NCBI RefSeq assembly: GCF_037042905.1
Contig: NC_087254.1
Span: 33,046,001-33,110,000, forward strand
Reading direction: 5' to 3'
Origin: Lytechinus pictus
Lineage: Eukaryota
Length of the DNA: 64,000 bases
The notes beneath the pieces were generated by a model. It made no database searches. It was not told where the DNA came from and saw only the letters and a program-made list of their open reading frames with translations. Of this stretch, positions 5,889 to 38,268 are shown in pieces; the stretch's first letter is position 1, and the number at the start of each line of letters is the position of its first letter. The position numbers were made by a program, and so were the translations under genes.

Positions 5889-8800
5889 TCTTCTTCCACC
5901 TTCATTATCCCCTCTTCTCACTGACTCTTTCAACATTGCCAATTTTCTCTGTATACCCCCTCCCCCATTTCCCCCACCACTATTTTCAACTCCTCTCCCC
6001 CTCTCCCTCTTTCTATACCTCTCTCTCTCTCCCGACGCTCTGCGTCTCTTTTAACTTCTTTGTTCAAACATTGACAAACAATAAAAAAAAATCGAGTGAA
6101 TTATAATTTAAGGTGTTATTTTATATAAATTCATATATAGACTTCAACAAATTCACAATAAAGTGTATGTACATGTATAACATGTCCGTTAACCATCAAG
6201 ATCATAACCAAATTACCAGCATATCAAAAGGAAACTCCATCTTCACATGAAGTTAATATCAATATCAGAGAAAATTTGGAGAAAATCAGTGAGAAATGAT
6301 AAACTACATGTAAATCTTACATGTATCCTTTTTTTACGTTTTATTCCAACCCAAAAATTGCCACTGGAAGACTAAAGAATATTTTGTTTTGTTTACTTAT
6401 GAAATACATAGAGGTAAACAACGTATACGTGTATAGACAAATGACGTTATAAAATGCAAGCTTTTAAAACAATATCATTCGTTCGGTTTTCATAATTATA
6501 GCCCTTTTTAAACAAAGAAACATTTAGTTTGAGTGTAGACTTCCCCTTTTAAACGTACGGGTATACATTTTGGTCATGGAGCTATAACGGAACTTGAGCT
6601 CCATGGTCATGACGGTTGTATAGTGATGTTGTCTACATTCAACACTCAGCATGAAGGAGTGCATTTTGTGGTGGGGGTTCACTAACTTTTCAGCACAACT
6701 GTAGGCCTACGTATGCATTATGAGTATGATGATGGTTCAAAGATCGAAAGAAAAGGTTTGAGATTCGGACATCATTCTTCATATTTGCACAAGAATAATA
6801 ATAGTGCTTAAATGTATGTTTTACGCTTCGTGGTAATTGTTTTAATGCAATTGCCCTTTGGTCGGGTCGAATTGATATGGCCTAAACATCAACTCAAACA
6901 CGGAATTCAAACTAATTAATTGATTCATTGATAGAGAGTACATGCTTTATATTTATGCATTACACAGGGATTTAATGTTTACTATACACGGTAACATTGA
7001 TGACCTATGGACGCACTACATATCTTCCTCTTTTGAACATCATTTTATGACGGAAAGCAGGGGCCGCGGAACGGTTTCCAAAGTGGGGGGGGGGGGCATC
7101 ATATGGTCATTTTTACTTTTTTGTATGGGGGAGACATGGTAAAAATAATCTGTTGAGATTTAGCCTTTACTATTAACGTTCTGTTCAAAGCAGAAAATAC
7201 CCATTTTGAATTCTTTTAGATTGACCCAAATTAATGATATAATTTTCTATTATGTACGTTTGGACGATACATGCAAACGATATACATAAACTATAGAACG
7301 TTTATCATATTCCAATGAGCCACATGATAATGGTATAAAATAAATCCTGAGCAAATGCATTCATTTGATACATAAAAACCGTAGAACCAGGTTTGCGTGA
7401 CGACACCACATAAAGTTACCGTCGGCAATTTCATACACAGCTTCATTAAAAAAATGATCACTATATCTGGATTTAAGTGTAGAAGTACAGGTTTCATTCA
7501 TATGTTTTTGAAGTGTCTAAGTTGACAGCTATTTTAATCATGTTAATATGAGTATTTTTCATTAAGTTCTAGATGATGATTGTATCTACCTCAGATCAAT
7601 AACAGATTTCAACAGATTACAATCTGTGTTAAAAACATGCCTTTTTAAAAAGCACATGTATTAGCCCTATACAAAATTCAAACAATTATTCCACACGCAA
7701 AAATACTATTTATGACGATTATTATCATTTATCATGATGCGAATGTAGAAGTATCAAGCTAAATATAACAAGGGCAAAGTATGGAATTATGACACCACTC
7801 CTTGATGGGTTTTATTACATTTTACGAGTCTGTATCACATGCAATGCCTTCACTTAAAAGAAAGCCAGCAAGATTTACAGTAAAAACATTATAGTCACTG
7901 TTAATGTTGACTATCAATATTTAAGAATGCGCAAGTTTACTTATATTTGATTGTCTGACAATATCATAATAATTAATTTTGAAGGAACAATTAAGTAATC
8001 ATGCAGCTGATAATCAAGAGGATTCTCTAGGATTAGCAAGTGCAATGATAAAGGTTAAACTATCCAATTACAAATTTCGTCCATTATCTATGTAACGCTA
8101 TTTGACTTGCATAACATAGCGCGCGAAAGCCGGATATCTCCTTGATTAAAGAAATACAGTATATAGGTGTAGCTCTTTACAAGAAATATATTTTAAATAA
8201 ATAAAATGATGATTTTTCTTATGCCCTTACTCAGAATTGAAGTCAGTGGTTCGGGGTGTCTTTTGCATCCCGCAAACCATATTTTCCCCCTTTTCGAAAA
8301 ATTGTAATACTGATTTTGTTATGGGGTGAATAAATAAAATAATTTCAGGATAACACTCTTTACTATTTCTTATACTTTATATTCGATAAGCAATTACAAA
8401 TTTCTGTTACAATGTATAGTCTGTATACTTACATGTACTATATTCATACTCAAAAATTTTACACGTAAAAACCTGAGAATAGTAAGGACGGATTGAAAAA
8501 AAAAATACTTTCAAAGGCAAGATCATCTTTACAAACACATTTAACTAATTGCATAGGCAAAACATCACTTCCTGAATATAATACATGTAAATTCATATCG
8601 TTAGAATATACTTTAGAAAGCGAAATTATTAATCCAATAGTTTAGGGTAGAGTGATAGACCATCACCAACAAAGCAGAAAATAAACAAAAATATAGGATA
8701 ATTTCGGAACAAATATTGTAGATTCCATAATTTGCTTTATGTATATTTGCAGTTCGGATGTCATGTCACAAACCTACATCAATAAATAAACATTGATTTA

Positions 8801-9002: not shown

Positions 9003-10292
9003 TCATTTCATTAGACCTTGTCTTAGAGTGTTGCCAGGCCAGGTACTTGTTGTCTGATGGCGAGGTGATGTGAATTTGGGATTGCTGGAGACCACACCTT
9101 CAAAAGTTGGTTCCCAAATTTGAAGAGGAATTGCAGCAACGTGTTTCTTTTGTTTAGTCCATTTGTCTTTCGATCTCCTCGGCGAATCTGGTGACGACTG
9201 CGAATTATTACCGCTTTTCTTTGTAACCTGATCTTCCTTGCCCTGTCGCCCCCCTCCTCGGATTCCTTCACTATAAGGAGATTGATTAACATGATTCGGA
9301 GCTTCGTAGGAGTCCTTACTCTCGTTTTCTCGTTGTGATGGCACCACGAGGACATTGAAAGATGGAGATTTCTTCTGGGTGGGGGAGAGAATACCTTTAG
9401 TTGGCGACGGCGACGGTGTGTGCGCAGTTCCGACGTCGGGTTCGTAAACACGTTCCCGTAAAAGATTGGTTGTCTTTGAATGTGGTTCGTTGGGAGGGTG
9501 TTTTAACGAGGTGGGTGGTAAAGGAGGGAACCGTGTTTCTGAACCGTTCGACACCTTACTGGTGGTCAGGGGTTTTGGAACAGATTTACCCCCTCTCCGG
9601 GATGTGCTTGAAGGCAGTGATAGAGCTCTCTCAAGTCTACTCTTAGGAAGAGAATCGCAGAGGGAGCTTAAAGTCATTCCTGATAAATCAATCGCTGACG
9701 ATCCACTTTTGCTTCGTTCACGATTCTTTCCATTCGATTTCGATCTCCATTTCTCGATGTAAAGATCCGTCTTTGATCGATGCAACCAAGTCGGCGTCGA
9801 ACCCTCACTCATCGTCTCTCTCGGGTCGGTGAGAGGTAATCGTCGAAGAGCACTCTTGCTCCTCGTCAACCCATGGAACGTCCGTTGTCGGATCACCATG
9901 TATTTGTCGAGTCTCTCATTGATGGATCGCTTAAAGATGTCAGAATCCGAGCTCGACACCGCATTTGAAGCGTTCGGTTTTATCTGCACTCTTGCAACGT
10001 CGACGGCGCAGTGACGCGGTGACCAATCCGAGATCGAGAAGCCGTATGGGTCCCCGGCGTCGTAGACGGTGGATGCTGGCATCACTGTCGGCATGGGGGT
10101 GATGATCTGCTGATCGGGACTCGCCCCCAGAGTCCCTTGATTACCGCTACCAGCCGGTGGAGGGGCATGGTGGTACATGGTCCTGTAGGAAGAGATCGGG
10201 GGTGCCGTGTTGATCGTCTCGACATCATTGGTGTCGGCTGGAGTACCACTGAAATTACTCCATCTAGTTTCCGCCATCGGTCCTCGCGTCAT
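9003..10292 (-). CDS. Gene A: uncharacterised 429-aa disordered Ser/Pro/Arg-rich protein, single coding exon
   Basis: Uninterrupted 1.29-kb ORF, GC- and CpG-rich against an AT-rich background, ATG start. IPLQIWEP motif near the C-terminus. Confidence 0.8.
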   Translation of the reverse strand: MTRGPMAETRWSNFSGTPADTNDVETINTAPPISSYRTMYHHAPPPAGSGNQGTLGASPDQQIITPMPTVMPASTVYDAGDPYGFSISDWSPRHCAVDVARVQIKPNASNAVSSSDSDIFKRSINERLDKYMVIRQRTFHGLTRSKSALRRLPLTDPRETMSEGSTPTWLHRSKTDLYIEKWRSKSNGKNRERSKSGSSAIDLSGMTLSSLCDSLPKSRLERALSLPSSTSRRGGKSVPKPLTTSKVSNGSETRFPPLPPTSLKHPPNEPHSKTTNLLRERVYEPDVGTAHTPSPSPTKGILSPTQKKSPSFNVLVVPSQRENESKDSYEAPNHVNQSPYSEGIRGGGRQGKEDQVTKKSGNNSQSSPDSPRRSKDKWTKQKKHVAAIPLQIWEPTFEGVVSSNPKFTSPRHQTTSTWPGNTLRQGLMK

Positions 10293-12086
10293 AATACAAG
10301 CTTGAAGTTAATCTTCCATTCTGTGCTCCGATTAAATTCATTAATTTTTAATATTCATTCACCAAAAGAGATGTCAAATACATTAGGATCCTCTGCAGTA
10401 ATCGTGTTTAACTTGTGACAGAAAGCGAGAAAATCCGACTGAAGATACAAGCCTTCAGTTTGCCAATAAATTAAATTCAAAGTTTTGGCTGAAAAGCATG
10501 AGCGTTATCACACATCTGAAGATACGTGATTCAATTCTTTAAATGAAGATTAAATAGAAATCTTTATCCCTGGCTTTGCCAAAAAACAAATGATTTCGCG
10601 AATCCATGGTGCAACTTTTCATATGATCGTTAAAATCAACTGCTGTATATTCGTGCATGTTTACTCCTGTATGTGTAAATACTTTGGTATTTCCAACTCC
10701 AAGAGTGGGTAAAAGTCTAAAGTCTGTAAACTTTTTAAAAATAGTCTGTCTCTTCTGTTGAGAATCCAGTCAATCGAATACGAAGGATTCATTCGTTATT
10801 TCAAGTATACTTTCCGATGGTCTCGAATTGCCTCAGGATTACAATGAATGTTATTCAGTAAACAAGCGCGAGATATCAGATGCAATGCCGGCTGTTGGTT
10901 GACTTTACTACTATCAAACGGAGAAACGCACATACAACGTGTGTGCCCTTCGCACTGTCGATCAGCACTCACAATGAGATAGCGTATCGTAGCCGTAGCA
11001 ACGCTACGATAGGGGCGAACGGCTGAGAGTTGTTTAGGTCGCTTTTGTTTTCGTTCGTCCCGTGCGGGAATCAGCGTTTCTTTCATGAACTTTGCTCGCT
11101 ATTACCCCCCTCGCCCTCAGTAACAGGGGGTAAATCTCGTGACCCCTTTTTCGTGATGTCACTGCGAGCTCTTCCAGCATTTGCCAAACATCAACTCATG
11201 TTGGGTATGTGAGGCTTACGATGTTGTCTATCTCCGAGGACGTGTTTCCCATCAATACCGAACTTTGTTTGGTATGGTTTAGAGCGAGGCCTGATCACCG
11301 CAGGAACCTGCTGGGTCAGTTTATCCACATTAGTTTATGAAACCGAGGCGAGACCAGTCCGATCGAATAAATGGAGAAGTCCCCCTCGTCTTTGATTGGA
11401 AGACAATCCCATCCATACAATGACAATGGGGATGCTACCCCTCTCTGCATTCTTTTGTTCCGCTAGGCAGACCCTCTTTTTATGGACTCTCCAAAAGAGT
11501 CTTTGAAAGGGATGATTAGCACCGGAGGGGGTTAGTTGAATGCACTCCGGAGGACCATTGAGGTATTGAGTTGTTCCTATTGATCCGTAGCATTTCACAA
11601 AACAGTCCGAGTATCTCTGCTCAAAAAGACCCCAAAACCTGCCAAGGGCACTCGGTTACCTGGGCTGGGATAGGAGGAATGTTTTCATGAACAGGGCCAT
11701 GAAAACAACAAGAAGAACAGAGAGAGAGGGGGAGAGAGAGGGAGCTAGGGGGTGTCTTTGGAAGACAGGGGAGGGACACGGAAAGCTGTTGAGTATAAGA
11801 TCAAATTAATAGTTATGTTGACAATTGATGCAGTGATATACAAAATAAAATCCGTGGCAAATCTATTCTATTAAAGAAAATAGATATTGGAGAAGTGTAT
11901 TTTGGGGGAGGGGTGGTAGAGAAATTAGATTTCATATCCCCTACAGTATCTACTTTCTAATATTCGGAATAAAGAGAAGTGAAAAAAAAAGCAATAGAGG
12001 GGAAGGGATAAGGAATGGCAAGAAATGTAAGCATACAAAGACAAATAGGCTAACAAATAAACATATAGATATGTGGGTTTATGCCA

Positions 12087-12268
12087 NNNNNNNNNNNNNN
12101 NNNNNNNNNNNNNNNNNNNNNNNNNNNNNNNNNNNNNNNNNNNNNNNNNNNNNNNNNNNNNNNNNNNNNNNNNNNNNNNNNNNNNNNNNNNNNNNNNNNN
12201 NNNNNNNNNNNNNNNNNNNNNNNNNNNNNNNNNNNNNNNNNNNNNNNNNNNNNNNNNNNNNNNNNNNN
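12087..12268. other. Assembly gap
   Basis: Run of N. Confidence 1.
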
Positions 12269-12439
12269 GATATATACATTAATTAATAAATAGATAAATA
12301 AATAGCTAGGTTTTGAGAGGCAAAATCAATAAAACATGTATTGATTTACAGCGACATATCATATATAATTAAGAAAGCGATACATCCAAGGATCTAACGT
12401 TACAGCTAAACGAATTTACTCCAGATGAGACAAAATAGA

Positions 12440-13760
12440 ATAAGAACTACATGTGTGTTAAGTGTTTGCCAGTCGTTTATCTATTCATTCATTTTCATCA
12501 AACATGCGCTTTTATACACTCAATTAAAGCAGGTTGCCTCTTTATAAGCCGTTCCTATTACTAGCGTTTGCGTAATTGCCAAAGAACAGAATAAATTATC
12601 TGTGTGAAAAGAAGAAATAAATCGCTTCTTGCAAATTTTCGTCTGCCAAAAGAAAGAAGGAAATCAATTTGACTCTGTTTGTAACAATTGTAGAAGGCAA
12701 AAAGGGTCCTTCGTGAAGTTGTAAAGTGATACAGATTGATTTTATTAATACTGGAAGTCTTTGCTTGAGGTGATCTTTTAGACCAAGATCGTTGTAAAAA
12801 AAAATCATTATCATCTTTTTTTTTTTTCAAATGAAATAAATCCCTGAGGATCTAACTTAAAAGACGGACAACTTTCTATTACAACTTCATGAAATGATAA
12901 ATAACACGAAGCGTCAATATATTTGAATATATTTGAATATTTTGCCAATATGTGCTCTTTTCACAGGATCTCATGCTTCTAATCTATAAGTATAATGCTG
13001 TTATACTTTTCAAACTTTTCGATCAGATTTATATCTTGAAAATTACTTTTCCATCGAATATTTCATTGTTATTCTTCCGTTGCCTATGTAAGCAATACTA
13101 TCATTCTGCGTCTGCTTCGGTTTCGTATATCTCGTTGTAGAGAATTAGACCGAATATGCGCGAATTCTGTTCAAATCTTGAATCATATACCAAAAATCAT
13201 TAACATTTATACCATCATGACTCTCCTTCATAACATGTGGCCATTGATAGGGAGTTTAACTACTTTTATCCTGAATTCCTTTCAATATTTTTACGCTCTT
13301 ATTGTTGTCCTCTTAAAATTGTATGCTGTGTTATTATGCCAGTTTACAATGATTACATATTCATTTATATTCATTGTATATCTATATTATTCATTTTCTA
13401 TTCCTTGCTCCTTGTGAAAACCTTTTTCAATAACGTGATAGCAGCCTAATTCATTCAATTCATTCATTCAAAAAATATCTAGTGTAAATTCTTGCCAAAC
13501 TATTTGATTTTATGATCTTTTCTTATTCATGTTATTAGTAACAACATATATCATGTCATTTTTGTTATTTTGTTTGATTTACCGTATATGTTATGCTTCT
13601 TTCATATGTGTTTACTTTTTACTTTGTATTGTATATGGACCCCATGGAAGAACAGTATAGTCATGTCGACAAAACTGAAAATGGGCTATCCATCCGTTTT
13701 GCATTTTGCATTTTTGTTTTTTTATACGGAAAATAAATACTATACTATACTATACTATAA
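12440..13760 (+). mobile_element. Highly degenerate CR1/L2-group LINE remnant with 3' tail
   Basis: Weak RT-region fragments (AVPITSVCVIAK; LFKLFDQIYILKI). 3' end has ggaccccatggaagaacagta (also at 34776), then aataaa and (tacta)n. Confidence 0.45.
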
Positions 13761-13826
13761 CTAGCCCTAACTGTCAGTGCTATGCTTTTCAGCATTTGGC
13801 AGCTTTGGGCTCTATGTTTGATGCGA

Positions 13827-13989
13827 TGTTTAATGACTTTCAAGCGAATCGCTATTTCATAGGAGGGATGAAATAGCGACAGATACTGTCAAGCAGACAA
13901 GCACAGAGTATGGTAAATGTCATTAAACATGTGAAATAATGATATCCACATGAGTATCATTATGATTCGCTTGAAAGTCATCAAACATC
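13827..13989. mobile_element. Short inverted-repeat element
   Basis: cgatgtttaatgactttcaagcgaatc versus gattcgcttgaaagtcatcaaacatcg. Confidence 0.6.
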
Positions 13990-14650
13990 GAAGCTTAGAA
14001 TTGTTCTTTTTTAAAAATCGTGATATTTTGTGATGCTGTTGCTGAAATCCAGCGGAATGTGAGTTTTGGTGGTCAGATTGCGAGTGAATGTATCTTCTAT
14101 TATCCCGATAACTTTGAATGAAAAAAAGTCATCAAAAGAACCTTCAACTGGACCAAATGACGACAGTCCCAATGATATTCGACTATTGTTGGTGTACCAA
14201 TCCGACAAGACATGCAAAATAACGCTCATTTTCTGCATGACTTTTCAAGGGAAGAAGATTACTTACTCCCTTTTTATTATATTGCGCTCACCGAAAGTTT
14301 GCAAACATCGGTCAGGGTTTTTCATTGGTTGCTTCGATGGACCGCTGGAACTCGCGTTATTCTGGTTTATTGGGGTAAATCGGGGGAGGGGGGAGGGGGT
14401 AGCCTGCTCAAACACCCCAAAAACTTTTCAAGAAGTCATATCGTTATTACCACGTAATGAATGATACCATGGTCAATCCATATGACTACATCTTTAAATG
14501 AAATTTCTCAATTTCCCATTTCAAAACTTGGAATCTATCCAGTACCTTTATAATTTGTCCCATACTCGTGACATTATCACAAAAATTGTGTTTTTTAAAT
14601 AATGAGACGATTTTTACGGTTTATTGTTTATTTGTGTAACTCCGCTGACT

Positions 14651-14792
14651 TGGGTACCGGTAGGAAGTAATTCCTTAAAAAGCTGTGTGCGTTATGAACG
14701 CCTAGCTTAGCCGGGTAATATAGGAGCGCCTTGAGCACCTAACAAGGTGGATATGTGCGCAATATAAATACCTTATATTACTATTATTATTA
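14651..14792 (+). mobile_element. 5'-truncated copy of the SINE at 22563-22832
   Basis: Near-identical reverse complement of about 22563-22699, ending in an (ATT)n tail. Confidence 0.88.
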
Positions 14793-15851
14793 CAAAAGTC
14801 ATTACTTGAACATTTGTTATAACAGCAAATGACATGCTTCAAGTACACTTACGTTTATGGGGTGGGGGAATACCCGTTAAATTCATATCCTAGCACTTTT
14901 GAAGAGAAGGGAGAAGGTCATATATCCAAGCTGTATCCCATGGTTCAAGGAAAATGAATTATGACTCGATGAATTGATGGGAAATTTTGATACGAGGAAT
15001 CGATATTACCTTTAAAAAAATAATGCAAAATAAAGATTATTCTAAAACATGAAAAATGTTTAATGATCATGAAACTGAAAACATACACATTACGTCAAAT
15101 GATCTCTTAATCATCTCAACAAGTTTTTTTTTTTTTTTTTTTTTAGTATAGTATAGCCATGATAGACAGGTAATGAAACTGAGAATGAAGTAAACATTAT
15201 TATCAATGACGTATATACTGTACAATTTGAAACAGTTCTACAGACAGAATGATATCCACTTCGCAATGTTTGCTACCTTTCCTCCCTAATGTTTGTTTGG
15301 CAAATTGACCCGACGAGGTACTCTAACTTAAGACCATGAAATGAACAATTGATGATAAAACTAAAGACGTTTTAGCTTGCACCTACCGATGAAAGGGATG
15401 TGTATCACTCCAAAGTGGCGGGGGAATGTTTCTTTTTGTAACGATTTAATCAAACATCAAATATTGTACGTTTGGTGGAAAGAGGTTGATGAGTTTCTTT
15501 TGACAAGTTTTGTTTGTCTTTGGTTGTGTTTGGTGACGGTGATTGGGTGTAATGGACACAGACTGGCGTCAAGGTGTACTGGCACTTGGAAAGTGAGTCC
15601 GCATTAAACAACATTGAAATTATTTCATTCCTGCAATTATCAGAACAATCGTTTGTTGAACATAGTTTTCTTGAAACCAATGCGTTGTTGCAGTAAAACG
15701 ATATTGTAATAAGAGACGAATTCTTTGTTACGAGAAAAACGAATCTCATCAATTGTAAAGGAAATTTGAACTTGCTCTATTAACGGAGGGAGAACCTCGA
15801 CTGGTTTAATTTGAGTCTTTAAAACATTTGTACGGGTAATCATCCCCCAAA

Positions 15852-18164
15852 ATGATGGGGCAGAATCGAAAACGATTAACAAATAGACCTCGTTACAATC
15901 CACGGATAGAATCTCCGGATTTTATATTGACCAACTCAGTATCGAACTCCTCTTTCGAATCGACTTCGACTTTGTTTAAAGATCAAAGCAGCGGTGGAGA
16001 ATATCCGACAAAGAAACATCGAGGAAGAAATGAAGCCCTACCGACATCGCGGAAAATCAGGAGTAGGACTAGCGATCCAGCTTCGCGTCAAAAAGACGCA
16101 ATCGAGACGTACATTCGCCGTTATGTGACGTCGGCACCGGAGAACGCCAAGAGGCAGAATCCCGAAGATGATGACACACCGACTGGAACACGGGTTCGTT
16201 TGACTGACAATGTGAGGGTTGTCTTCGACGAAGACCGATATCGAAAATCACTTTCAACATGCACGTCACGCTTGGAATCGTCTATCACAATACGCAATTT
16301 TTCGTCGATCCATCATATCGCGGACCATAAAAGGAATGTCTGCGACGAAATGTTCCGCAACCGGTTTACTAAGACAGGAACGAGAAAAGACGATCAGAAA
16401 TTTGACGCAAAGCGGGTATTGAGTGACGAACTTGGATTTGACAACAGTGATGATAACTACGATGGGAAAATTATTTTGATATCAAAAGCTCTTGGGGACG
16501 GATCAAACGAACTGGAGACTGACAATTATATTCGAACAAGCGAGTGTTTGCATGGTATGACACATCAAGACAAGCGTGTTGATAATTTGTTGGATGAGAT
16601 GAAGAAATCGGACTCTGTAATTGCTAAAAAGGGCAAAAGAAATGCTTCGAAATTTCAGAGAGAATCGTTTAGGATTGAGGGATTGCGTGTTGGGGACTAT
16701 GGGCAATATCACGACGAGTTTGCGAGGGATTTTTCAGACTTCCCTCAACCATGTCAACCACAGCCAATTGAAGAAACCACAGATATGAATTGCATCTCAA
16801 CGATCGATACAGGTTTATCAAACAGTGTGCCAATCAGAAGTGAATCAATTTACATTCAGAATGGTCAACGTAACAAATCTGACGGCTCTCCGAAAGAATC
16901 CGATCTAAATAAGATTTCGTCGTTCAATTCGCCGTTCAAAATTATCGGGACCAATGTAGAATCAAATATGATTACGGAAAGCATTGGACTTGCTTCTAAA
17001 ATGGAAGGAAGTGAGTTTGAAAATATATCAGAGCCCTCCATGAGAATTACGTTGAAGATTCCATCAGCCGAGGACCCTGGTGTCACCGGAAATCGATTTA
17101 GTGGTCATCCCGTGGTTCAAGAAGTTAGTGCCGTGTCACCTGTTGTCGGTGACAGTAGTCTTACAAAGGTCGATCCATGTTTTACTTGTCCGATGTGCGT
17201 CGCCGAGAGAGAGAAGGAAAAAAAACAAATGAGTATTAAGGACGGGTCCTTCATGTTACCAGATTCATTACAAGCCGCTGGTTTGCGTGGTGACGAAGTG
17301 ATGGATTTCAGATCTTCGGGAATCTTTGAGAGCAAGCCATTTCTCCCACCCTCAATCCCAGACGGGGTTGAACTGAAGCGTGTAGATGCGTATGACATCA
17401 CAAGTTTGAGCGGAAACTCAAGGCGCAAACCCGATGACGAAGACAACAAAGAACCTAAAGCAGACTTCAGACTCTCCCTGAAGGATGTTCGGATGGAAAA
17501 ATCGTCACCCACTTTGCCACCACCTGCGAAAACTGATGGAAATTCGTTTCATGTGCAAGGTAATGAACTGCAACCGCAGGACAGATTCTCTTTTGTCTCC
17601 GAATCCCCAATCGCAGGTTTCCCGATGGCACTCGGAAAGCAGTATCCCATTCCAAAATTTCGCCCGAGTCCCATCTACTCCAGTAAGTGGGTTGTGGAAA
17701 ACTCGAGTCCGTCGCGCAGTTCGACCTCTCAGCCATCCTGGAACGGAAACATCACAGGAAAGACAGTAGGTGCTTCCGGTACTCACCAAGATTCGGTCGA
17801 AAATGAAATCATGACTATGAGGATTCCTTTCCTGATTTGGAGAAACAAACAGAAAAAAGAAGGAATATCGAGCATCAAGGACAACTGCAAGGGCAACACC
17901 ATAACCCTGAATCATCGACCGGGAAGCAGCCGGGCAACCAAAGTATCTGGAACAGGCAACCCGAAGAAGCTGACTTTGGCAGAGCAAGCACTGCTGACGC
18001 AGAGAATGGAGAGTGATCGCAAGACCGCGTTCCCTTGCCCTCCGAACAGTCCTGCACCTGAACAGCTAGTCGAACTCGTCAACGATCACTATGAAGAAAG
18101 TGAAGATACTCTATCGCAGTCTCACTTACAAGATTCGAAATTGACAACTGATATTCAAGCTTAG
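15852..18164 (+). CDS. Gene B: uncharacterised 770-aa mostly disordered protein, single coding exon
   Basis: 2.3-kb open frame with ATG in an AAAATG context. Motifs RVVF, CFTCPMC, IPFLIWR and FPCPPNSP. Confidence 0.85.
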   Translation: MMGQNRKRLTNRPRYNPRIESPDFILTNSVSNSSFESTSTLFKDQSSGGEYPTKKHRGRNEALPTSRKIRSRTSDPASRQKDAIETYIRRYVTSAPENAKRQNPEDDDTPTGTRVRLTDNVRVVFDEDRYRKSLSTCTSRLESSITIRNFSSIHHIADHKRNVCDEMFRNRFTKTGTRKDDQKFDAKRVLSDELGFDNSDDNYDGKIILISKALGDGSNELETDNYIRTSECLHGMTHQDKRVDNLLDEMKKSDSVIAKKGKRNASKFQRESFRIEGLRVGDYGQYHDEFARDFSDFPQPCQPQPIEETTDMNCISTIDTGLSNSVPIRSESIYIQNGQRNKSDGSPKESDLNKISSFNSPFKIIGTNVESNMITESIGLASKMEGSEFENISEPSMRITLKIPSAEDPGVTGNRFSGHPVVQEVSAVSPVVGDSSLTKVDPCFTCPMCVAEREKEKKQMSIKDGSFMLPDSLQAAGLRGDEVMDFRSSGIFESKPFLPPSIPDGVELKRVDAYDITSLSGNSRRKPDDEDNKEPKADFRLSLKDVRMEKSSPTLPPPAKTDGNSFHVQGNELQPQDRFSFVSESPIAGFPMALGKQYPIPKFRPSPIYSSKWVVENSSPSRSSTSQPSWNGNITGKTVGASGTHQDSVENEIMTMRIPFLIWRNKQKKEGISSIKDNCKGNTITLNHRPGSSRATKVSGTGNPKKLTLAEQALLTQRMESDRKTAFPCPPNSPAPEQLVELVNDHYEESEDTLSQSHLQDSKLTTDIQA

Positions 18165-27011: not shown

Positions 27012-27564
27012 CTTAGGGAGTATGCTTTCATGTTCCATGAGGATGTCAGATCCCTTTTTTCTTGGACATCCATTTCGACCTTATGTTCCATGGTCAAATA
27101 ATCTTTATTCCCCATCAGAAGATGTGGTTGAACTGGGTGTCGATCTGATAGATGCCATAGCGGTAATTGGTTGTAGGCAAAGATTTTTCTCGAAGACGGC
27201 CTGGATCATCTCCCTTCGTCCTTGTCTCTTCCTCTTCCCTCGTTAATATGAACAAACTTCGAGGATGACGATCTCCCCCTTTCCTACTACACTAGGGAAG
27301 ACAGGATTGAGTCTTTCTGCATTTTCATCCCTATTTCCCATCCTGATCGCGTTGATGGCATATGCTGGCGATATAACTCTTACAAGAATGCCGAGGGGAT
27401 GACTTCATCTCATCGTCACCCCTCCACACTTTTTGTCCTCTTCTTCTTCATCATCCTCATCTTCCTCCTCCTACTACTCCTCATCATCTCAATGTCGCCT
27501 ATAGGTTGAGATGTTTGCCGGGATGTTTGCCTATAGAGGTCAAAGGCAAAGTCAAGATGTCGAT
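27012..27564 (-). pseudogene. Degenerate exon duplicate of gene F
   Basis: Acceptor tttatag|ATCGACATCTTG nearly identical to the one at 26608; poly-Glu remnant; AAG|GTTTG donor; no continuous frame. Confidence 0.65.
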
Positions 27565-27953: not shown

Positions 27954-28219
27954 CTATTCCTCACCACGACCCCCTGGACGAGCTGGATGTTGGTTGGTCG
28001 GGTAAATGACAGTGAATGCTGAACGGATCAAGTCCCACACGATACAGGCAACAAAGACGGCATAGATTGTACCAACAAAAACACCGCCGCCCTCTTCTTC
28101 CTCCTTCTCCTCCTCGTCTTCCTTCACCTCACCTAGCTGGACTTCAGTGTGGAAGATGCTATGGAAAGCATGGCGGATGAATGCCCAGAGGTTGTTTAGA
28201 GCAGAGCCAGGATGTGGGC
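27954..28219 (-). CDS. Gene F exon 6 (last coding exon)
   Basis: Acceptor atatcag|GC, phase 1. Reads GPHPGSALNNLWAFIRHAFHSIFHTEVQLGEVKEDEEEKEEEEGGGVFVGTIYAVFVACIVWDLIRSAF...EE*; homologous to the exon 5 module. Confidence 0.68.
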
Positions 28220-28485
28220 CTGATATTATAAATCAAAGATATGGTATGAAATCAGCTCTATAGATAAAAAAAATAATTTCTAATTCAATTCGACCCATAT
28301 AATTTATGACCAGAAAAAAACTTATTCATTCCTTTCAATGTATATAGCAATGTGATACAATTTCTTCTTCTTCTTCAGATTCAGAGATTAATTAATTAAT
28401 TCATTCATTTATTCTTCTTCTTCTTCTTCTTCTCCCCCTTCTCTTCCTCCTCCTCCTTCGGATAAAATACTAAATCATGTCAAAC

Positions 28486-29442
28486 CTTGGTGAGTATAAT
28501 CTCCTGTTTCCCCGAAGACGACCAGGGCTCTCTCTTCTTCGACGTACCTGTTTCCCATCATGTTGTGGATGAACTGAATGCCAGTCTGGCAGATGTTACA
28601 GATCGATGCATGGATGAAATCCCAGATAACAAACATTACAAAGACGGCGAAGATCTTTCCATCGAATACATCAACCCTCTCATTCCTTTCCTCTTCCATT
28701 TGCTCTTCTTCCCTCTCCGCCTCTTCCTCCTCCTCCATCTCATCATCCTCGTCTCCGTCGTCGTCCCCAAAGATGATATATTGGACGACCTGGAGCCCGA
28801 TGTTGAAGATGCTCACAAAAGGGTGGAAGATGATTCCAAAAGGTATGAGGATGCAAATCAAGATGACAAAGATCACTGTCAAGACTTGCGTGAAGAAATC
28901 ATCCTCGTCTTCTTTCTCTGCCTCTTCCCTCTCCTGTCCTTCCTTCTTCTCCTCCTCCTTGTCTTCTTCCTCATCATCTCCCTCTACCTCCTCCCACTCC
29001 TCTTCCTCCTCCTCTTCTTCTTCCTTGTTCTCCTCCTCCTCTTCCTCCATATCATCATCCTCCTGGTCCTCGTCATCGTCCCCGAAGATGATATACTGGA
29101 CGACCTGGAGCCCGGTGTTGAAGATGCTCACAAAAGGGTGGAAGATGATCCCGATAGGTTGGAGGATGCACATCCAGATGGCAAAGATCACTGTCAGGAC
29201 TTGCGTGAAGAAATCCTCCTCCAATTCCTCATCCTCAATGATGGTACCCAGGACGAGTTGGAGTCCGGTTTGATAGAGGCTCCCGAAAGCTTTGAAGATG
29301 TACATCCAGATAAGGAAGATCATTGCAAAGATCTGACTGAAGAAATTGTCAGATTCACGATCCTGTGACGTAGCGTAATCGTCATTGATGACGTCATCTC
29401 CCTCTGAGCCGCATGATGGGTAGCTGCTGTAGGAGGCCTCGT
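28486..29442 (-). CDS. Gene F exon 5: repeated hydrophobic segment plus poly-Glu modules
   Basis: Extends ORF 28475-29323 to acceptor ctaaaaag|AC in phase 1; 957 nt; donor CAAG|GTTTGA; internal duplication with 315-bp period. Confidence 0.8.
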
Positions 29443-30524
29443 CTTTTTAGAAGAAATTGCAAAAAAAGGAAAGAAAATGATTTGTAAAATGAAAGAAATT
29501 AAAAAAAAACTAATTTTCCATTGGTTAGTCAATACATGTTATACTCTTAATAAATAAATAATATAAATGGATGTTGATTTGATGATATTGAAAGGATATT
29601 TCCTCTTCGAAACTCGCCTTAACATGTATCAAAACGCAACAACTGCCAGAAAACGAGATGAAAGAAAAGAAGGATTTAAGGCAAATCCATTAATAACCAT
29701 GCAGATAGTTTTGCCCAAAGCTTCTGACAAGCACAGGAACCATAATTATTGATAAGAAAATCAAAATCGTACAACATAATAAAACTAAAAGAGGAAGTAG
29801 CACGAATATAATCAACTTTTACTTGTGGTTTTTCTGTTAGTTTACGTTCAACATGTTCTTCGAACTACATCAGAAAAAGGAAACCTTTACATATTTCAAA
29901 GTTTAAACAAATCTCATTTTCTTAAACCAATTATAATGAAATTATAAATATATCTATAAATTTGAAAAAGAGCGAAAATGTGAGTTAATAACGAAATTCC
30001 ATTTTCTGACGAAATTTGTAATAATTGATTATGCAAAAAAATATTGCTCCATTAAGATTTTCAAATCTTTGCAAGAAAGCAAAGATGAATAGAATCTATT
30101 GGGTAAGAAGTTAAATTTTTTTGATTTTCAAATTATAGAAAACCCACGGCTAATCATAGAATAAAGTTTAAGACATAAGAAAGTGACCTTTTGGAACATT
30201 GTGAATGCATAAATTGAGTAAGACGTCTGTGAAATTCAGCCGGGGATAATGATTTCATTTTTCTGAGTTTATTTAAAATTTTGACATTTCCAAGTAGAAA
30301 TTTTGTCATTCTCATATTGCATTATGATCTCTTCTTGTTATTCAACAGCAATGACCCATACAACTGGATTTTGTGAACCCTTCACCAAGACTATCTTCGA
30401 GCTTTAAAATCTTGTAATATCTGTTATTCTTTACTTACGTGTATCTGTTCTGAATTATTCTGCATTGTTCTGTATTATTTTGTATAATAAAATCCATATT
30501 TTCCCCCAATTTTTTATATCTTAC

Positions 30525-30707
30525 CCATTTCATCAGTGATCGTATCGTCGATGACGTGGATGTGATCGTACTCCATGACCATCAATGACGTCTGGTCAAT
30601 CGATGAGCTGGTCTTATCGTCATCATGGCATGTCTCTACGACATCATCGTCGATCTCGTCCTTGGTCTCTTCCTGGGCCTGATCAACCGTGTACAGGTCT
30701 TGGGCGA
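30525..30707 (-). CDS. Gene F exon 4 (acidic)
   Basis: ttttcttcccataag|TC ... GG|gtaaga; 183 nt, phase 1-1; IAQDLYTVDQAQEETKDEIDDDVVETCHDDDK... Confidence 0.8.
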
Positions 30708-31444
30708 CTTATGGGAAGAAAAAAAAGAAAATAAAATCACGCAATTGACTTTCAGGAACATCAGCAAAATCTGGTCTTCATTTGGCCCCTAAATATCAAA
30801 CACCAGGCATGCTATAACCTTGACAAATGCCATACAATTCATGACAAATTATTTAGCAGAATTCATATTGGAAAATGATATTTGGTGAAAATGGATGGAA
30901 GTAAATGTTGATTTGAATTAATGAATAGGCCTATTTGCATCATTTTTAAAATCAAAATCTAAGCGGCAGTGACGTATTTGTGTATTACGTTGACAAAATA
31001 CTGTCCTTATGTAACTAGATTTCTAATAAACAAACGTGTGTCTCAACGATAATCAATAAATAAAAATTCAATTAAATTCATTAATTTTAGACTAGAGATA
31101 GAGATAAGTGTATCCTAGATGTATAGACATGAATCACAAGATCTGTTGTTATTCAGCATCATTATTCAAATTAGTTTTTACGAGGTTACAGAAATTCCTA
31201 TGACAAATTATCTAAGAATAATTCATAATATCTTATTATCTACACCTCTCTCTCTCTCTCTCTCTGTCTGTTTCTCTTCCTATCGCTCTTTCTCATCTTC
31301 CTCCATTTCTCTCCAATCCCCCCCCCCAATTCTTCATTCAATTTTTTTTATTATAGTTTCCATTCTATTTTGGGGTCGAATATTTCTTAGTTTGTCACCA
31401 TTTAACCATGTTTTCAATAAACTTGTACTCCATAGGCTACTTAC

Positions 31445-31600
31445 TTGCGCTCTTTGTATACACAAGGCTGGTGGCCGAGATCTTGTCGGCATCATTGTTG
31501 GATTCGACATCAGCCTCACTGCCGTGGTCGTTCTCAAACCCGCAGTCGGTGTCAGATGCCACTGAGTCGTCATCGCTCTCCTCGTCGTTGATAGATCGAT
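31445..31600 (-). CDS. Gene F exon 3 (acidic)
   Basis: cataacag|AT ... GCAA|gtaagt; 156 nt, phase 1-1; HRSINDEESDDDSVASDTDCGFENDHGSEADVES... Confidence 0.8.
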
Positions 31601-32000
31601 CTGTTATGAGTGACGTCAGCGAAATAAAAATGATTTATTTCAGAAAGATTTTATTTTCTCTTCTTTGGTGCTGAAAATTATCACCATCTACCACAATAAG
31701 TTCTTAACCTTTGTGACTAAATGGTGAAGAAGAACGTGACTGTGTTAAAAATATGCACAAAAAACAGTACTCAAATAGTTAATTTCCAATATTTCTCGTA
31801 AACTGGATGAGCATGGCATACAATGGAGTGATGTTACTTATTTAAATCTAAAATGAAATGGTTACCCCGAAACCCTCCACAGCGGACTTTACAATAGACA
31901 ATCTACATTATTTATGTAACAAATATTTGCTAATAGAATAAGTAGATTAACATGTTTAATGGTAAGCCATATAGAGGCGACTATATACGCAATAACTTAC

Positions 32001-32295
32001 GGTATGCCAGGAAGGCTTGGGCGGAAACGCTTACGTCCCTTGGATAGGACGTAGATGGTAACTGGTCTTTAACCTTGCTGCTCACTGCTGGTGGCATCAA
32101 GAACTGATGACAATCCTGACCAAGTACAGCAGGTGCAGACCAAGAATCATGAAGTGATCTCGGCTCGAGACTGGCGGCTGATCTGACCAAATTAACCAAT
32201 GACTGGCAGGAGTAGTTGCTGACAAGAGTGACGTCGTCGTTGTCGTCATCAATGCTGATGTCATCTGTCACTTCATGAATGGCCGATGGTTTTGG
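32001..32295 (-). CDS. Gene F exon 2
   Basis: tacatag|CCA ... TACC|gtaagt; 295 nt, phase 0-1; in frame with ORF 31981-32271. Confidence 0.8.
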
Positions 32296-32619
32296 CTATG
32301 TAATATTTGGAATTTTTAAGAATGATTCAATTTATCATGTCTATAAGATCACTTGTACGCCTATATTGCAGAGTTAAAATAACAACTTTATTTGCAATAA
32401 AAGAACCATTAAGTTAAAACCAAGTGTAGGGGATTATTTTTTATCATGTTTGTCTAGAAAATTAGTTCTCTGTTAAAATTTGATACTGCATGAGAAGCTA
32501 GAGTAAGCTTAATGACAAGCTAACTTAGTTTAAACGTATTATCTTGTCTATCATTTTTTCATTAATTTCAAGCAAATTTTATAATCGTAAAACATGAAAC
32601 GTAGGCCTATCTCACTAAC

Positions 32620-33590
32620 AAACAATGCGGGCGCGACGTGTGAGCTGAATCCTTCGGTATATTGATTTGACAATTTTTATTAGAAGTATACCTTCAATGT
32701 AAGTATTTTATATTGCGACGAACTGCTGAGAATGCTAGCTGTTTGAGTTATATACTGACCTGGCACTGAGAAAACACTCATTAAACAAATAGTGCAAGCG
32801 CGAAACACGAGCAAAACTTATCTCTAAAATACTGACAGGAAAATGGAAAATTCTAAGTAGGCCTACTATCGTTTGAACTCATGTAATGCGTGCGCGAAGT
32901 GCGAGCTTGTTGGTTTTGGGTAGGCTTGTATACGGAACATTTTAAGTATGTTTTGTAATCGTGAACAGGAAACGTGTCTCATTTTCAAAAAAAAATTATG
33001 CAAGCGCGAAGCGCGGTCGGAAACGTTTTGGTGCATTGGCTTCAAAAGGATAATTTTGTAACGCAAGCGCGACGCGAGCTGAAATTAAAGTCGATGTAAT
33101 GAACTGAAAACGATAATTTAAATCTAGATTTGTACTCGTGAATGTGTTATGTCTCCCACTGAAGGAATGGGAATAAGACCTAATCGGATGAGATTTTTTA
33201 AGGGCTATTTGTGCAAATTAATGAACAGGGTACTTATTTTCAGTAACATATTTGTTATATGCAAATATGAAAACAGGATATTTAAGCTTTAAAAAAATTA
33301 TGAACATGATGCGTGTAAAGCCCCTTTCACAATTGCTAGTGCGATCGTTTGAGATCATTTGGTCACAATATATGTTCCACAGAATCCCTACGGTAGTAAG
33401 CAGTCGCACCACCAATTGTGAAAGGGGCTTAACAAAACAAACTAATGAAAGAGCAAGTGCGAACTAAATCATTTTGGTTGTATACTGACTTGAAAACGAA
33501 ACATTTTACATTGTTTAAAGCATTATAATCCTTAGAAATAAGGTCTAATTTAACGGACAATGCGAGCACGAAGGGCGAGCGAAATTTGCA
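32620..33590 (+). repeat. Dispersed GCGAGCGCGAAGCGCGAGC-like motif array, probably an old transposon interior
   Basis: About 7 degenerate copies near 32625, 32792, 32886, 32998, 33061, 33451 and 33559, separated by AT-rich sequence. Confidence 0.65.
33319..33429. mobile_element. PIF/Harbinger-type MITE with TAA target-site duplication
   Basis: taa|agcccctttcacaattg ... caattgtgaaaggggct|taa; perfect 17-bp TIR. Confidence 0.85.
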
Positions 33591-34327
33591 TTTTTATATA
33601 GAGAACTAAAAGATTTGCAATTCGACAATCCTCCCCTCCTCTCAGTTTCTTCATTTTAATTCCTCTTTTTATTTTTTTTTCCCGGCCTTCTTTCCCTTTT
33701 CCTCACTTATTTTTTATTTTTCTCCTCTCCCCGCCCCTTTCCTACCATTTTTTTCTGAGCTGCGGTCGCTTCAGGCACCTTGGTCAGACTGTGTCTTTCC
33801 ATTTCCCATTATCATTCCAGTGTTAGGAGGCGATGTTTTTTGGGCTCGAAGAAATTTTTTTGAAAAAAAAACACAATCTATTTTCTCACTCATTCTGCCA
33901 TTTATTATCATATCTTTCTCTTTATTTACTTTCCCTTCTCCATTTCCTTGCTTATATTATTTAAACCAGTGGGAGGGATGGGCTAGCAGCTTGGGGCCGA
34001 GGTGGTCTTGTTTCCGACTCCTTTCTCTCCCCCCCCCTCTCTCCCTCTCTCTCTTCGGTTTCTTGCAGGTCTACTTCGGCAAGGCTCTTTCTCCTTTATT
34101 TCATTTTCTTTTCCTCCCCCGTTTATATCCTATTTACCTTTTTTTCCCTTCATTCTTTCTCTATCTCTCCCTCTCTTATCTCTTTGCTGGGGGGGGGGGG
34201 GGGGTGACAGACCCCCTCGGTCCTCATGGATATGTACCTGTAATTATCCCTCCCCCACCAGAAAATATGATTAGGGTTCAAAATATATAGGTCCTCAACA
34301 TTCAGGCATCAAGAAATTCCACTGCCT

Positions 34328-34638
34328 NNNNNNNNNNNNNNNNNNNNNNNNNNNNNNNNNNNNNNNNNNNNNNNNNNNNNNNNNNNNNNNNNNNNNNNNN
34401 NNNNNNNNNNNNNNNNNNNNNNNNNNNNNNNNNNNNNNNNNNNNNNNNNNNNNNNNNNNNNNNNNNNNNNNNNNNNNNNNNNNNNNNNNNNNNNNNNNNN
34501 NNNNNNNNNNNNNNNNNNNNNNNNNNNNNNNNNNNNNNNNNNNNNNNNNNNNNNNNNNNNNNNNNNNNNNNNNNNNNNNNNNNNNNNNNNNNNNNNNNNN
34601 NNNNNNNNNNNNNNNNNNNNNNNNNNNNNNNNNNNNNN
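34328..34638. other. Assembly gap
   Basis: Run of N. Confidence 1.
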
Positions 34639-35296
34639 CATCAATGACTACTACTTATTCAAACATGTAAAAATAACAACAGTATCATCATCATCATCAA
34701 CAATTTTTCTATTTCCCCCTTATGCTCTAAGAGATTTTTGTAACAATTTTCTTAATAACTTGTGTTTTAATCATTGGACCCCATGGAAGAACAGTACTGT
34801 CTATGGGCAGAGCTGAACTGGGTGTCCTTCCGATTTCACTATTTATCATGTCTATCTCATATTTTTTTTTGTATATATCTGTTCTAATTTGTTATTCTTT
34901 TATACTTTGCTTTTATATGTTCATTTGTACATTCATGTTTATTTTTTATTGTGAATTTCGGAAAATAAATAAATACAAATACAAAATTTACGATACTTGA
35001 GATATGATTCATATACTGCAACCTCAAAGCGCTCTTCACTGACATTATGAAAAGCTCTGATAACACATTCTAAAGATTAATTCAGCTTTCCAATTTCGAT
35101 ACTACCGGTACAGATCTAGATTTTAGTTTTATTAGCTACCTGCAAAATTAATGAGAAACAGAGAGAACTTAGGAAAAAAATGATTTCTCGTATCTGATCT
35201 TAATATAAGTTATATTTTTCAAGTGATGAGACAATGATCAAATTTAATATCAGAAACTATTAAGAGGTAACATGTATATTGAAATAAATCCCTCAC

Positions 35297-35437
35297 CTTC
35301 TTATTCTTCGAGAATAATTTCTTGATTCCTGCCAAGCAGCAGACATTGCTACCCTCTGCCTGCTCAGAAGAATAATCAAAACTTTCTTCTTCAGATGGTA
35401 AAGATCGGGCTCTAACTTTGAATTTGATAAAGCCCAT
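35297..35437 (-). CDS. Gene F exon 1 (first coding exon)
   Basis: ATAATGG start; MGFIKFKVRARSLPSEEESFDYSSEQAEGSNVCCLAGIKKLFSKNKK|gtgagg; phase 0 matches exon 2. Confidence 0.75.
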
Positions 35438-35539: not shown

Positions 35540-35625
35540 AGCAGCGCGGCGGTGGTTACCGCAGTAGAACGCATGCGCAATGCCTACTATTCGCCCTACG
35601 TCAACAATGGTAAAAGCGCGCAGCA
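35540..35625 (-). promoter_or_regulatory. Putative gene F promoter with an NRF1/P3A2-like site
   Basis: CGCATGCGCA at 35570-35579 in a local CpG-rich patch about 140 bp upstream of the ATG. Confidence 0.5.
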
Positions 35626-37074: not shown

Positions 37075-38268
37075 TCATTGTGCAATGTCTGCGTGACTGG
37101 TGACATCATCCGGCGTATTTGGTGGGCAAAAATGGCCGACGTCAGACGGCTTAAAGTCGTTACACAGTGGGCAATCCCTTTTGTGGCCATGCAATGTTCG
37201 AGTCGAGATTCCTTTGACCGATTCGTAGCCAGATGTATTCGTATTCGACCCACTGGACACCCGTTCTATAGGTAACGACAACGACGCCGTGGATGACGAC
37301 CCATGAAGCTTTTCTAAACGCGCTTGCGTCGCGTCATCGATGATATCGTAAAGACCGTCACTGCGTAAGATGTATTTCGAGCTTGGTTGTGTCGTTGATG
37401 AGGTGATGTTAACAAGATGAGCACAATGAGTTGTTGGAAGGAATTGATCAAAATCAATTGGCGATGGAAGACGACTCTCTGGAGAGGACCCGGTGATGTT
37501 GGTCCCGTTATTGTTCTTCCCTAGTCGCTGAGATAATTGCTGTTTTCGCTTAGAAGCAAGTTTATGAAGAATCACTCTTTCGCGAGGAGATACATTACTC
37601 GGAGTTTTCAAGGGTGCAGAAGGCGAGGGTACGAGAGGCAAGAGTCGCTGTTTCGAAGATTCGACAACCGACATCAACGAGTCCGTCTTGACTTCCGAAG
37701 TCGATGATGAGTGCGGTGTCGAATATTTAAGACAACCGATCGGCCATCGGATTGCGCGAGCCATCCGGGTATTCTCTCTCGCTCTACTATGACTAAATGG
37801 AACGCTCCCAACTTGAAGAGATCCAATGAATGCCGACGTTGGACATTGGTAAAGTGAGCTACTACTCGACTTTACGCTGTGCGCGTCGCATTCCTCTTCC
37901 CTTTGTTCTTGCGTGTGAAACCCGTCACGCAACGGTAGTGTTGGCGCGTTTGTGAGGGACTTGTCATCTTCTCCCTTATTTTTCGACTTCCTTCTTTTCC
38001 CTGGCTTCCAGCATCTCATTCCAGTGCCTTTCAATCGCTTCCAAGAGTCTCTATCCCGTGCCTCGACGGTCAATCCGCACTCTTCGACTCGAATTCTGGG
38101 CAAGAAAGGGGTGTTGTTGTGCGACAACTTCGGCTTAGACGATGACGATGTCCCTTCGCCCCCAACTTCTAAAAGGGACAGTTTGGTGTCCAAATTGCAA
38201 CCACCATAAGCCGATCTCAGTTCCGATTTCATCGCCATTATTCGAAATAATGCATCCAAAGTGACCAT
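37075..38268 (-). CDS. Gene C: uncharacterised 397-aa disordered protein with a C-terminal HxxDCPLC...CPPNTP module
   Basis: 1.19-kb GC/CpG-rich ORF with ATG start; C-terminal motif shared with gene E. Confidence 0.82.
   Translation of the reverse strand: MVTLDALFRIMAMKSELRSAYGGCNLDTKLSLLEVGGEGTSSSSKPKLSHNNTPFLPRIRVEECGLTVEARDRDSWKRLKGTGMRCWKPGKRRKSKNKGEDDKSLTNAPTLPLRDGFHTQEQREEECDAHSVKSSSSSLYQCPTSAFIGSLQVGSVPFSHSRARENTRMARAIRWPIGCLKYSTPHSSSTSEVKTDSLMSVVESSKQRLLPLVPSPSAPLKTPSNVSPRERVILHKLASKRKQQLSQRLGKNNNGTNITGSSPESRLPSPIDFDQFLPTTHCAHLVNITSSTTQPSSKYILRSDGLYDIIDDATQARLEKLHGSSSTASLSLPIERVSSGSNTNTSGYESVKGISTRTLHGHKRDCPLCNDFKPSDVGHFCPPNTPDDVTSHADIAQ

Follow-up and report, generated by a model that had tools for sequence, protein, structure and literature searches.

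A 64,000-nucleotide stretch of the genome of the sea urchin Lytechinus pictus (assembly GCF_037042905.1, contig NC_087254.1, positions 33,046,001 to 33,110,000 of the forward strand; hereafter the window) contains on its minus strand a genuine spliced protein-coding gene of six exons, the product of which combines a highly acidic composition with repeated, long hydrophobic segments. By motif and alignment, the gene is placed in an undescribed family known to date from sea urchins only, within which it appears as an unusually hydrophobic, repeat-amplified offshoot that has lost the consensus for N-terminal myristoylation. The best overall explanation, to which we assign about an even chance, is a young duplicate of the Lytechinus lineage whose strongly hydrophobic units would embed the protein in a membrane.

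A conserved and spliced gene

Rebuilt from the window, the six minus-strand exons join into 1998 nucleotides (141 + 295 + 156 + 183 + 957 + 266) that encode 665 residues and a stop codon (Table 1), recovering exactly the lengths and the consistent GT-AG junctions proposed in a preliminary description of this DNA. All introns are of the GT..AG type, with one weak donor at exon 5 (GTTTGA). The orthologue from Lytechinus variegatus, rebuilt by homology, retains ten of ten splice sites and an intact open reading frame of 864 residues. Between the two species, the exons are 93.5-97.3% identical (96.5% for exon 1), whereas introns 2-5 reach 83-89% and are rich in insertions and deletions; those in the coding sequence are in-frame only. 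The ratio of nonsynonymous to synonymous substitution rates (dN/dS) for the L. pictus gene against its orthologue is 0.30 overall; exons 1-4 give 0.22, exon 5 gives 0.27, and the short exon 6 gives 0.75. The hydrophobic units hardly change from one species to the other; the acidic linkers differ in length and sequence. The orthologous reading frame, the conserved splice sites, and the dN/dS of 0.30 together place the locus beyond chance.

The 5' end of the model is also supported. Exon 1 is homologous to the N-termini of paralogues (MG[SC].KS[RK]...CC..GIRK.FSK), and in the L. variegatus protein model the homologues of exons 1 and 2 are joined directly, without extra residues. The assembly gap in intron 1 lies 659 nucleotides from exon 1 and 2033 nucleotides from exon 2 and is crossed by no reading frame. 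Upstream of the start codon, the palindrome TGCGCATGCG, which we take to be an NRF-1/P3A2-type site, is invariant in four family members: the window gene, its L. variegatus orthologue (~9865-9875 of the CM031024.1 stretch), the C10 paralogue described below, and a paralogue on chromosome 21. A GGT[AT]ACCA box, and another conserved block closer to the ATG, are common to the promoters or 5' leaders of the same four genes. The sharing of the upstream TGCGCATGCG block with the orthologue and two paralogues, one of which lies on a different chromosome, argues that exon 1 is a true first exon.

Junction reads had been suggested in the preliminary description as a check on the exon chain. Two RNA sequencing (RNA-seq) reads from run X4 span the exon 4/5 junction, running from position 30525 directly into exon 5. 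The 18 letters that intervene in these reads are the first 18 nucleotides of exon 5 in an allele with an in-frame 9-nucleotide insertion at 29434-29442, at the exon 5 start; the insertion adds Tyr-His-Ala, is present in L. variegatus, and is absent from the assembled haplotype. The X4 reads differ from the assembly at ~4% of sites. Among ten transcript variant sites, drawn from the reads and a small contig, seven fall on third codon positions and one is a synonymous change at a first position, while the remaining two are adjacent and exchange Leu for Glu within an acidic linker; six of the ten match the L. variegatus base and four do not. A search of the L. pictus genome itself found no second locus with the FFTQ unit encoded in exon 5 and, because this unit is confined to a single locus, the divergent reads are assigned to another allele and not to a paralogue. 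The RNA-seq libraries appear to be unstranded, so that read direction is uninformative.

The support from RNA, although positive, is thin. The locus is nearly silent in three raw L. pictus RNA-seq runs, with only X4 contributing a few fragments, all in exons 3-5, and no reads across the exon 1/2 or exon 5/6 junctions were seen in these runs. Nor is the open frame of exon 5 by itself strong evidence, because the opposite strand also holds long frames that mirror it, of 293 residues (28487-29368) and 231 residues (28578-29273). These plus-strand frames are not genes and are explained by the GAA/GAG-rich, repeat-rich, low-complexity nature of the coding strand. A decaying or non-functional locus, in which GAA/GAG low complexity holds the reading frame open and the exon chain is fortuitous, would be compatible with these mirror frames, with the very low expression, with a repeat number that is unstable between species, and with the weak exon 5 donor. 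However, it has already been largely refuted by the intact orthologous frame with its ten conserved splice sites, the dN/dS of 0.30, the near-invariance of the hydrophobic units, the restriction of coding indels to in-frame changes, and the pair of spliced reads, and we regard it as very improbable.

A deep pile of RNA reads at 27436-27467 (~30-50 in each direction) was considered as a 3' exon and rejected, as only 32 nucleotides match and both ends are loose; the pile is a low-complexity match to abundant transcripts of acidic proteins encoded elsewhere. The DNA of the window is AT-rich.

Table 1. Exons, helical units (U1-U6), and other features of the locus, in window coordinates
Feature	Position	Strand	Description
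Palindrome TGCGCATGCG	35570-35579	-	Promoter/5' leader, ~135 nt upstream of the ATG
Exon 1	35297-35437	-	141 nt, 47 aa; begins MGFIKFK; Cys-Cys and basic patch CCLAGIKKLFSKNKK
Assembly gap (run of N)	34328-34638		Within intron 1, noncoding
Exon 2	32001-32295	-	295 nt; domain conserved in the family (SWSAPAVLGQD, PSTSYPRDVSVSAQAFLAY)
Exon 3	31445-31600	-	156 nt; acidic, Ser/Asp-rich; few reads in RNA-seq run X4
Exon 4	30525-30707	-	183 nt; acidic
Exon 5	28486-29442	-	957 nt; units U1-U4 with poly-Glu/Asp tracts between them; 323-codon open frame
U1	29225-29344	-	FFSQ...; 36 hydrophobic residues, then acidic ones; identical in L. variegatus
U2	29081-29212	-	Long 44-aa FFTQ unit; 0 charged residues, two prolines
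U3	28766-28897	-	Second 44-aa FFTQ unit; 90% DNA identity to U2
U4	28556-28660	-	Ancestral family unit (hydrophobic stretch-W-DFIH...QTGIQFIH), then the conserved EERALVVFGETGD linker
Exon 6	27954-28219	-	266 nt including the TAG stop; U5, short acidic tract, U6, C-terminus
U5	28128-28202	-	Amphipathic unit in exon 6
U6	27996-28085	-	Hydrophobic unit in exon 6

The orthologue and a sea-urchin family

When exon 5 was used as the query of an exhaustive HMMER search, two L. variegatus proteins were returned. XP_041473780.1 ("protein Ycf2-like", 607 residues) matches exons 1-5 and ends in a frame-shifted Gly/Arg tail, and XP_041474630.1 (uncharacterized LOC121423341, 240 residues) covers the exon 5/6 join, in which the ..THQ-G-PHPGS.. 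of the window gene is also present, together with the C-terminus. The two models lie on the same strand, 13 bp apart (CM031024.1, reversed; stretch 10001-17659). Because exon 5 in this species is one uninterrupted frame of 520 codons, the two models constitute a single 864-residue gene that NCBI has split in two, and the annotation can be corrected accordingly. The preliminary description had presented the locus as a hidden gene, which needs qualification: the L. variegatus orthologue was already in NCBI, divided between these two entries and misnamed. The name "Ycf2-like" is a low-complexity artefact.

The orthologue shares with the window gene its exon structure, splice sites, hydrophobic units, and C-terminus, as well as an N-terminal half that is ~92% identical. 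The upstream neighbor gene is also the same; it occupies window positions 37075-38268 on the minus strand (397 residues) and is syntenic in L. variegatus (398 residues, CM031024.1 stretch 7216-8412). The species differ in that L. variegatus has four long FFTQ units compared to two in L. pictus; FFTQ copy number thus changes quickly between them.

Only sea-urchin proteins were retrieved by the exhaustive HMMER search and by word-indexed searches, for which the N-terminal half, a family profile, and the family member P0019 served as queries. Among the records open to the word-indexed searches, no L. pictus entry for the window gene itself surfaced. The named homologues come from L. variegatus, L. 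pictus, and Strongylocentrotus purpuratus, and two more sequences have no recorded species; all are labeled "uncharacterized" or carry composition-driven names. At least seven family loci are present in the L. pictus genome. Paralogous loci with both the exon 2 domain and the C-terminal unit lie on C10, C18, C9, C21 (two), and C11, and matches on C16 and C5 are to the C-terminal unit only.

The family architecture begins with an MGCVKSR or MGSAKSR N-terminus of the Src-family SH4 type, followed by a Cys-Cys and basic amphipathic stretch, the exon 2 domain, an acidic middle rich in Ser, Asp, and Glu, and one to three C-terminal units. In the window gene, the Cys-Cys/basic stretch (CC.[AT]GI[RK]K.FSK) is present with its cysteines at residues 33-34, as is the signature of the exon 2 domain (SWSAPA[VI]L and PSTSYP[RK]DV.VS[AS]Q.[FCL]L.Y), for which matches to paralogues reach expectation values (E) of 1e-12 to 1e-45. 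In alignments, the C-terminal unit reads W-x-[FY]-I-[RH]...Q-x-G-[LIV]-Q-[FIV], and each copy continues into acidic residues and an ERAVVV.GETGDRTPQGHP linker; U4 aligns with it column by column in all family members, and the residues I, I, G, and Q hardly vary. The family is newly defined by a few short motifs, namely the SH4-like N-terminus, the Cys-Cys patch, SWSAPA, and the QTGLQF unit.

The closest relative within the genome is the C10 paralogue, a pair formed by L. pictus P0018 ("bromo and FHA domain-containing protein DDB_G0267958-like") and L. variegatus LOC121422677 (P0003). The L. pictus member is encoded, without a single mismatch to P0018, at C10:32901814-32905463, on the same chromosome as the window gene and ~141 kb away from it. 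The paralogue shares the exon 2 domain (80% identical), the Cys-Cys/basic patch, a unit with a preceding hydrophobic stretch, and the intron positions, including that of an intron within the ..TPQ-G-HP.. linker, which in the window gene separates exons 5 and 6. In contrast to the window gene, it has kept the MGSAKSR motif, has one moderately hydrophobic and one amphipathic unit, and is devoid of the FFTQ amplification. Neither a bromo nor an FHA domain is detectable in it by Pfam, and the product name is an artefact of composition.

In a maximum-likelihood tree, built on N-terminal halves and rooted only at its midpoint, the C10 paralogue pair emerges as the sister group of the window gene plus its orthologue (100/99 support), and a clade with the S. 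purpuratus protein and the two sequences of unrecorded species lies outside. Since the tree places the S. purpuratus clade outside both pairs, it suggests that the window gene arose by duplication within the Lytechinus lineage.

Hydrophobic units and the probable mode of membrane association

The 665-residue product contains 13.5% Glu and 10.5% Asp (24% combined), amounting to 160 acidic compared to 40 basic residues and a net charge of about -120. The first impression of an acidic N-terminal half followed by long hydrophobic segments that are parted by acidic tracts was accurate, and the 44-residue segment then quoted as an example corresponds to U2. The N-terminus contains no hydrophobic stretch resembling a signal peptide, again in agreement with the preliminary description, and its estimate of about six hydrophobic or amphipathic segments is borne out by six helical units. 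Five of these (U1-U4 and U6) are of transmembrane grade, with best 18-residue Eisenberg mean hydrophobicities (<H>) of 0.76-1.02, and all five exceed the 1.4 cut-off on the Kyte-Doolittle scale. By an approximate Hessa sum, only four 19-residue segments pass a permissive cut-off of 1.5 kcal/mol, and U4 fails. U3 ranks as the most hydrophobic, with an approximate Hessa sum of -4.1 kcal/mol, and U2 and U3 together are distinguished by only 0-1 charged residue per 44 and <H> up to 1.02. Compared with the family unit, U1 and U4 are collinear, whereas U2 and U3 carry ~7 extra residues (LQPIGII).

The gene is not an isolated oddity, in that the other family members mostly carry amphipathic versions of the same unit. 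The units of P0022 and P0023 and the later units of P0017 and P0018 have best 18-residue <H> values of 0.27-0.37, hydrophobic moments of 0.37-0.45, and 6-8 charged residues; they are amphipathic and too polar to span a bilayer. The first units of three paralogues, in which the hydrophobic stretch precedes the Trp, are intermediate (best <H> of 0.86 in P0018, 0.84 in P0019, and 0.66 in P0017). A second difference concerns the N-terminus. Six paralogue N-termini conform to the N-myristoylation pattern M-G-{EDRKHPFYW}-x-x-[STAGCN]-{P}, which corresponds to PROSITE PS00008. The MGFIKF of L. pictus and L. variegatus deviates from it at two positions; the Cys-Cys patch is kept.

In the window gene, the hydrophobic stretch preceding the Trp of the unit has thus reached transmembrane grade, and the unit, extended by ~7 residues (LQPIGII), has been amplified in tandem. 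In a simple model, the resulting segments would embed the protein in a cellular membrane and replace the lost myristate as its anchor, while the poly-Glu/Asp tracts would remain cytosolic as a dense polyanionic layer. These tracts may in turn act as a low-affinity cation (Ca2+) buffer or as an electrostatic scaffold. Membrane embedding of the protein is likely. That it enters the membrane from the cytosolic side, in the form of kinked helices or hairpins, is a narrower proposition, to which we give an even chance or slightly less. This mode is favored because a signal peptide is lacking, because the N-termini of the paralogues belong to the cytosolic acylated type, because the homologous units of more distant paralogues cannot span a bilayer, and because a 44-residue unit containing two prolines is too long for a single pass. 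The most specific version, according to which a lipid-anchored, peripheral acidic protein became a monotopic-hairpin integral protein in Lytechinus as an amphipathic module grew more hydrophobic, was amplified, and the myristoyl anchor was concurrently lost, is put forward tentatively and may well be wrong.

Structure prediction, also suggested at the outset, was carried out with AlphaFold2. For exon 5 and the L. variegatus C-terminal protein, the models are of low confidence (mean predicted local distance difference test scores of 48 and 52; predicted template-modeling scores [pTM] of 0.22-0.25). Each unit is drawn as a single straight helix, with neither a hairpin nor a tertiary fold. The one continuous helix per unit would fit a polytopic arrangement, in which U1, U2, U3, U4, and U6 each form a long, kinked helix that traverses the bilayer a single time and the acidic tracts alternate between cytosol and lumen. 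The most hydrophobic 19-residue segments on the Hessa scale straddle the central Pro/Gly and do not lie on its flanks, which points in the same direction, and five units make a plausible layout of five spans. In one variant of this arrangement, a luminal poly-acidic loop could serve as a calsequestrin-like element for Ca2+ storage. However, the predictions on which it draws are of low confidence, units of 44 residues with two prolines far exceed one span, the homologous units of the distant paralogues (P0022/P0023 and the later ones of P0017/P0018) are amphipathic and cannot span, and the loops show no positive-inside signal. We consider the polytopic arrangement the main rival, though an unlikely one.

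Alternatively, the protein may not be embedded in a membrane at all. Its hydrophobic helices could pack into a bundle, an oligomer, or a lipid-droplet or condensate assembly kept soluble by the acidic tracts. The paralogue units are amphipathic helix-turn-helix modules of the type that binds proteins or surfaces, and the extreme acidity could solubilize hydrophobic cores. In contrast, the charge content and hydrophobicity of U2 and U3 are typical of bilayer-embedded segments, and AlphaFold2 does not produce a packed bundle, as reflected in the low pTM. A soluble assembly of this kind is thus a distinctly poor prospect.

Several considerations weigh against embedding from the cytosolic side itself. 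Membrane anchors seldom have flanks as strongly acidic as these, which provide no positive-inside signal. The straight helices of the AlphaFold2 models, low in confidence as they are, do not contain the hairpin. It is important to note that the hydrophobicity scales, including the Hessa values, and the myristoylation pattern are approximate. What the analysis shows directly is the exon structure, its conservation under purifying selection, membership in the family, the grades of hydrophobicity, and the motif states; membrane insertion and topology are inferred, and the role in cation buffering or scaffolding proposed for the acidic tracts is pure speculation by analogy.

If the exchange of anchors did take place, the gene would represent a rare and datable case of amphipathic helices evolving into membrane-embedded segments, with all intermediate grades surviving as paralogues within one genome. 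If, more specifically, conversion to hairpins occurred, it would mark the recent, traceable birth of a class of repeated membrane-hairpin anchors, carrying a polyanionic brush of about -120 charges on the membrane surface. If not, the locus would be an ordinary lineage-specific gene. Because L. pictus is readily handled in the laboratory, localization of the protein and knockout of the gene are feasible.

Comparison with known families and membrane proteins

The preliminary description had not recognized a family, and neither did searches of the databases. Of the two outcomes that it had named as refuting, a lack of spliced transcripts and a clear match to a known family, neither was borne out. 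Pfam searches with every exon and with the family members gave no match above a curated threshold, only sub-threshold, composition-driven ones; a profile search of the Protein Data Bank (PDB) with the family alignment gave 0 matches at E up to 1, and look-alike searches of the ESM Atlas with exon 5 and P0019 gave no usable match. In the literature, nothing relevant was found on this architecture, on its LOC and XP identifiers, or on its motif strings. A divergent Ycf2, ZIP zinc transporter, or bromo/FHA protein is nevertheless what the NCBI product names and the Pfam ZIP (PF02535) scores of exon 5 (23.8 bits) and XP_041473780.1 (34.4 bits) might suggest. These scores fall under the curated cut-off of 35.1 bits. 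Moreover, exon 5 covers only positions 109-200 of the ZIP profile, and the best stretch of XP_041473780.1 (115-192) fails on its own. Among the Pfam matches listed for the window exons and XP_041473780.1, there is none to AAA/Ycf2, bromo, or FHA domains, and the product names reflect acidic low complexity. The probability of such an identity is accordingly negligible.

By architecture, the wider family resembles acylated acidic proteins of the membrane surface (MARCKS, GAP-43, and BASP1) and the SH4 N-termini of Src-family proteins. In its members, an MGxxxS or MGC N-terminus and/or a Cys-Cys pair near basic residues is combined with a long, acidic, and probably disordered body. There is no sequence homology to these proteins, however, and the window gene departs from them further in that its N-terminus does not fit the myristoylation pattern and its product has transmembrane-grade segments that they lack.

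The window protein itself had been likened in the preliminary description to the membrane hairpins of reticulons, caveolins, and oleosins. Membership in these families receives no support from sequence or structure, and the Pfam domains of reticulon (RHD), caveolin, and oleosin are absent among the matches listed at E up to 1 for the exons, XP_041473780.1, and XP_041474630.1. The likeness stands as an analogy of architecture only, in which over-long hydrophobic segments with a central Pro/Gly are flanked on both sides by hydrophilic sequence in proteins without a signal peptide. The sea-urchin protein differs from these hairpins in its poly-acidic flanks and in having tandem units derived from an amphipathic family module.

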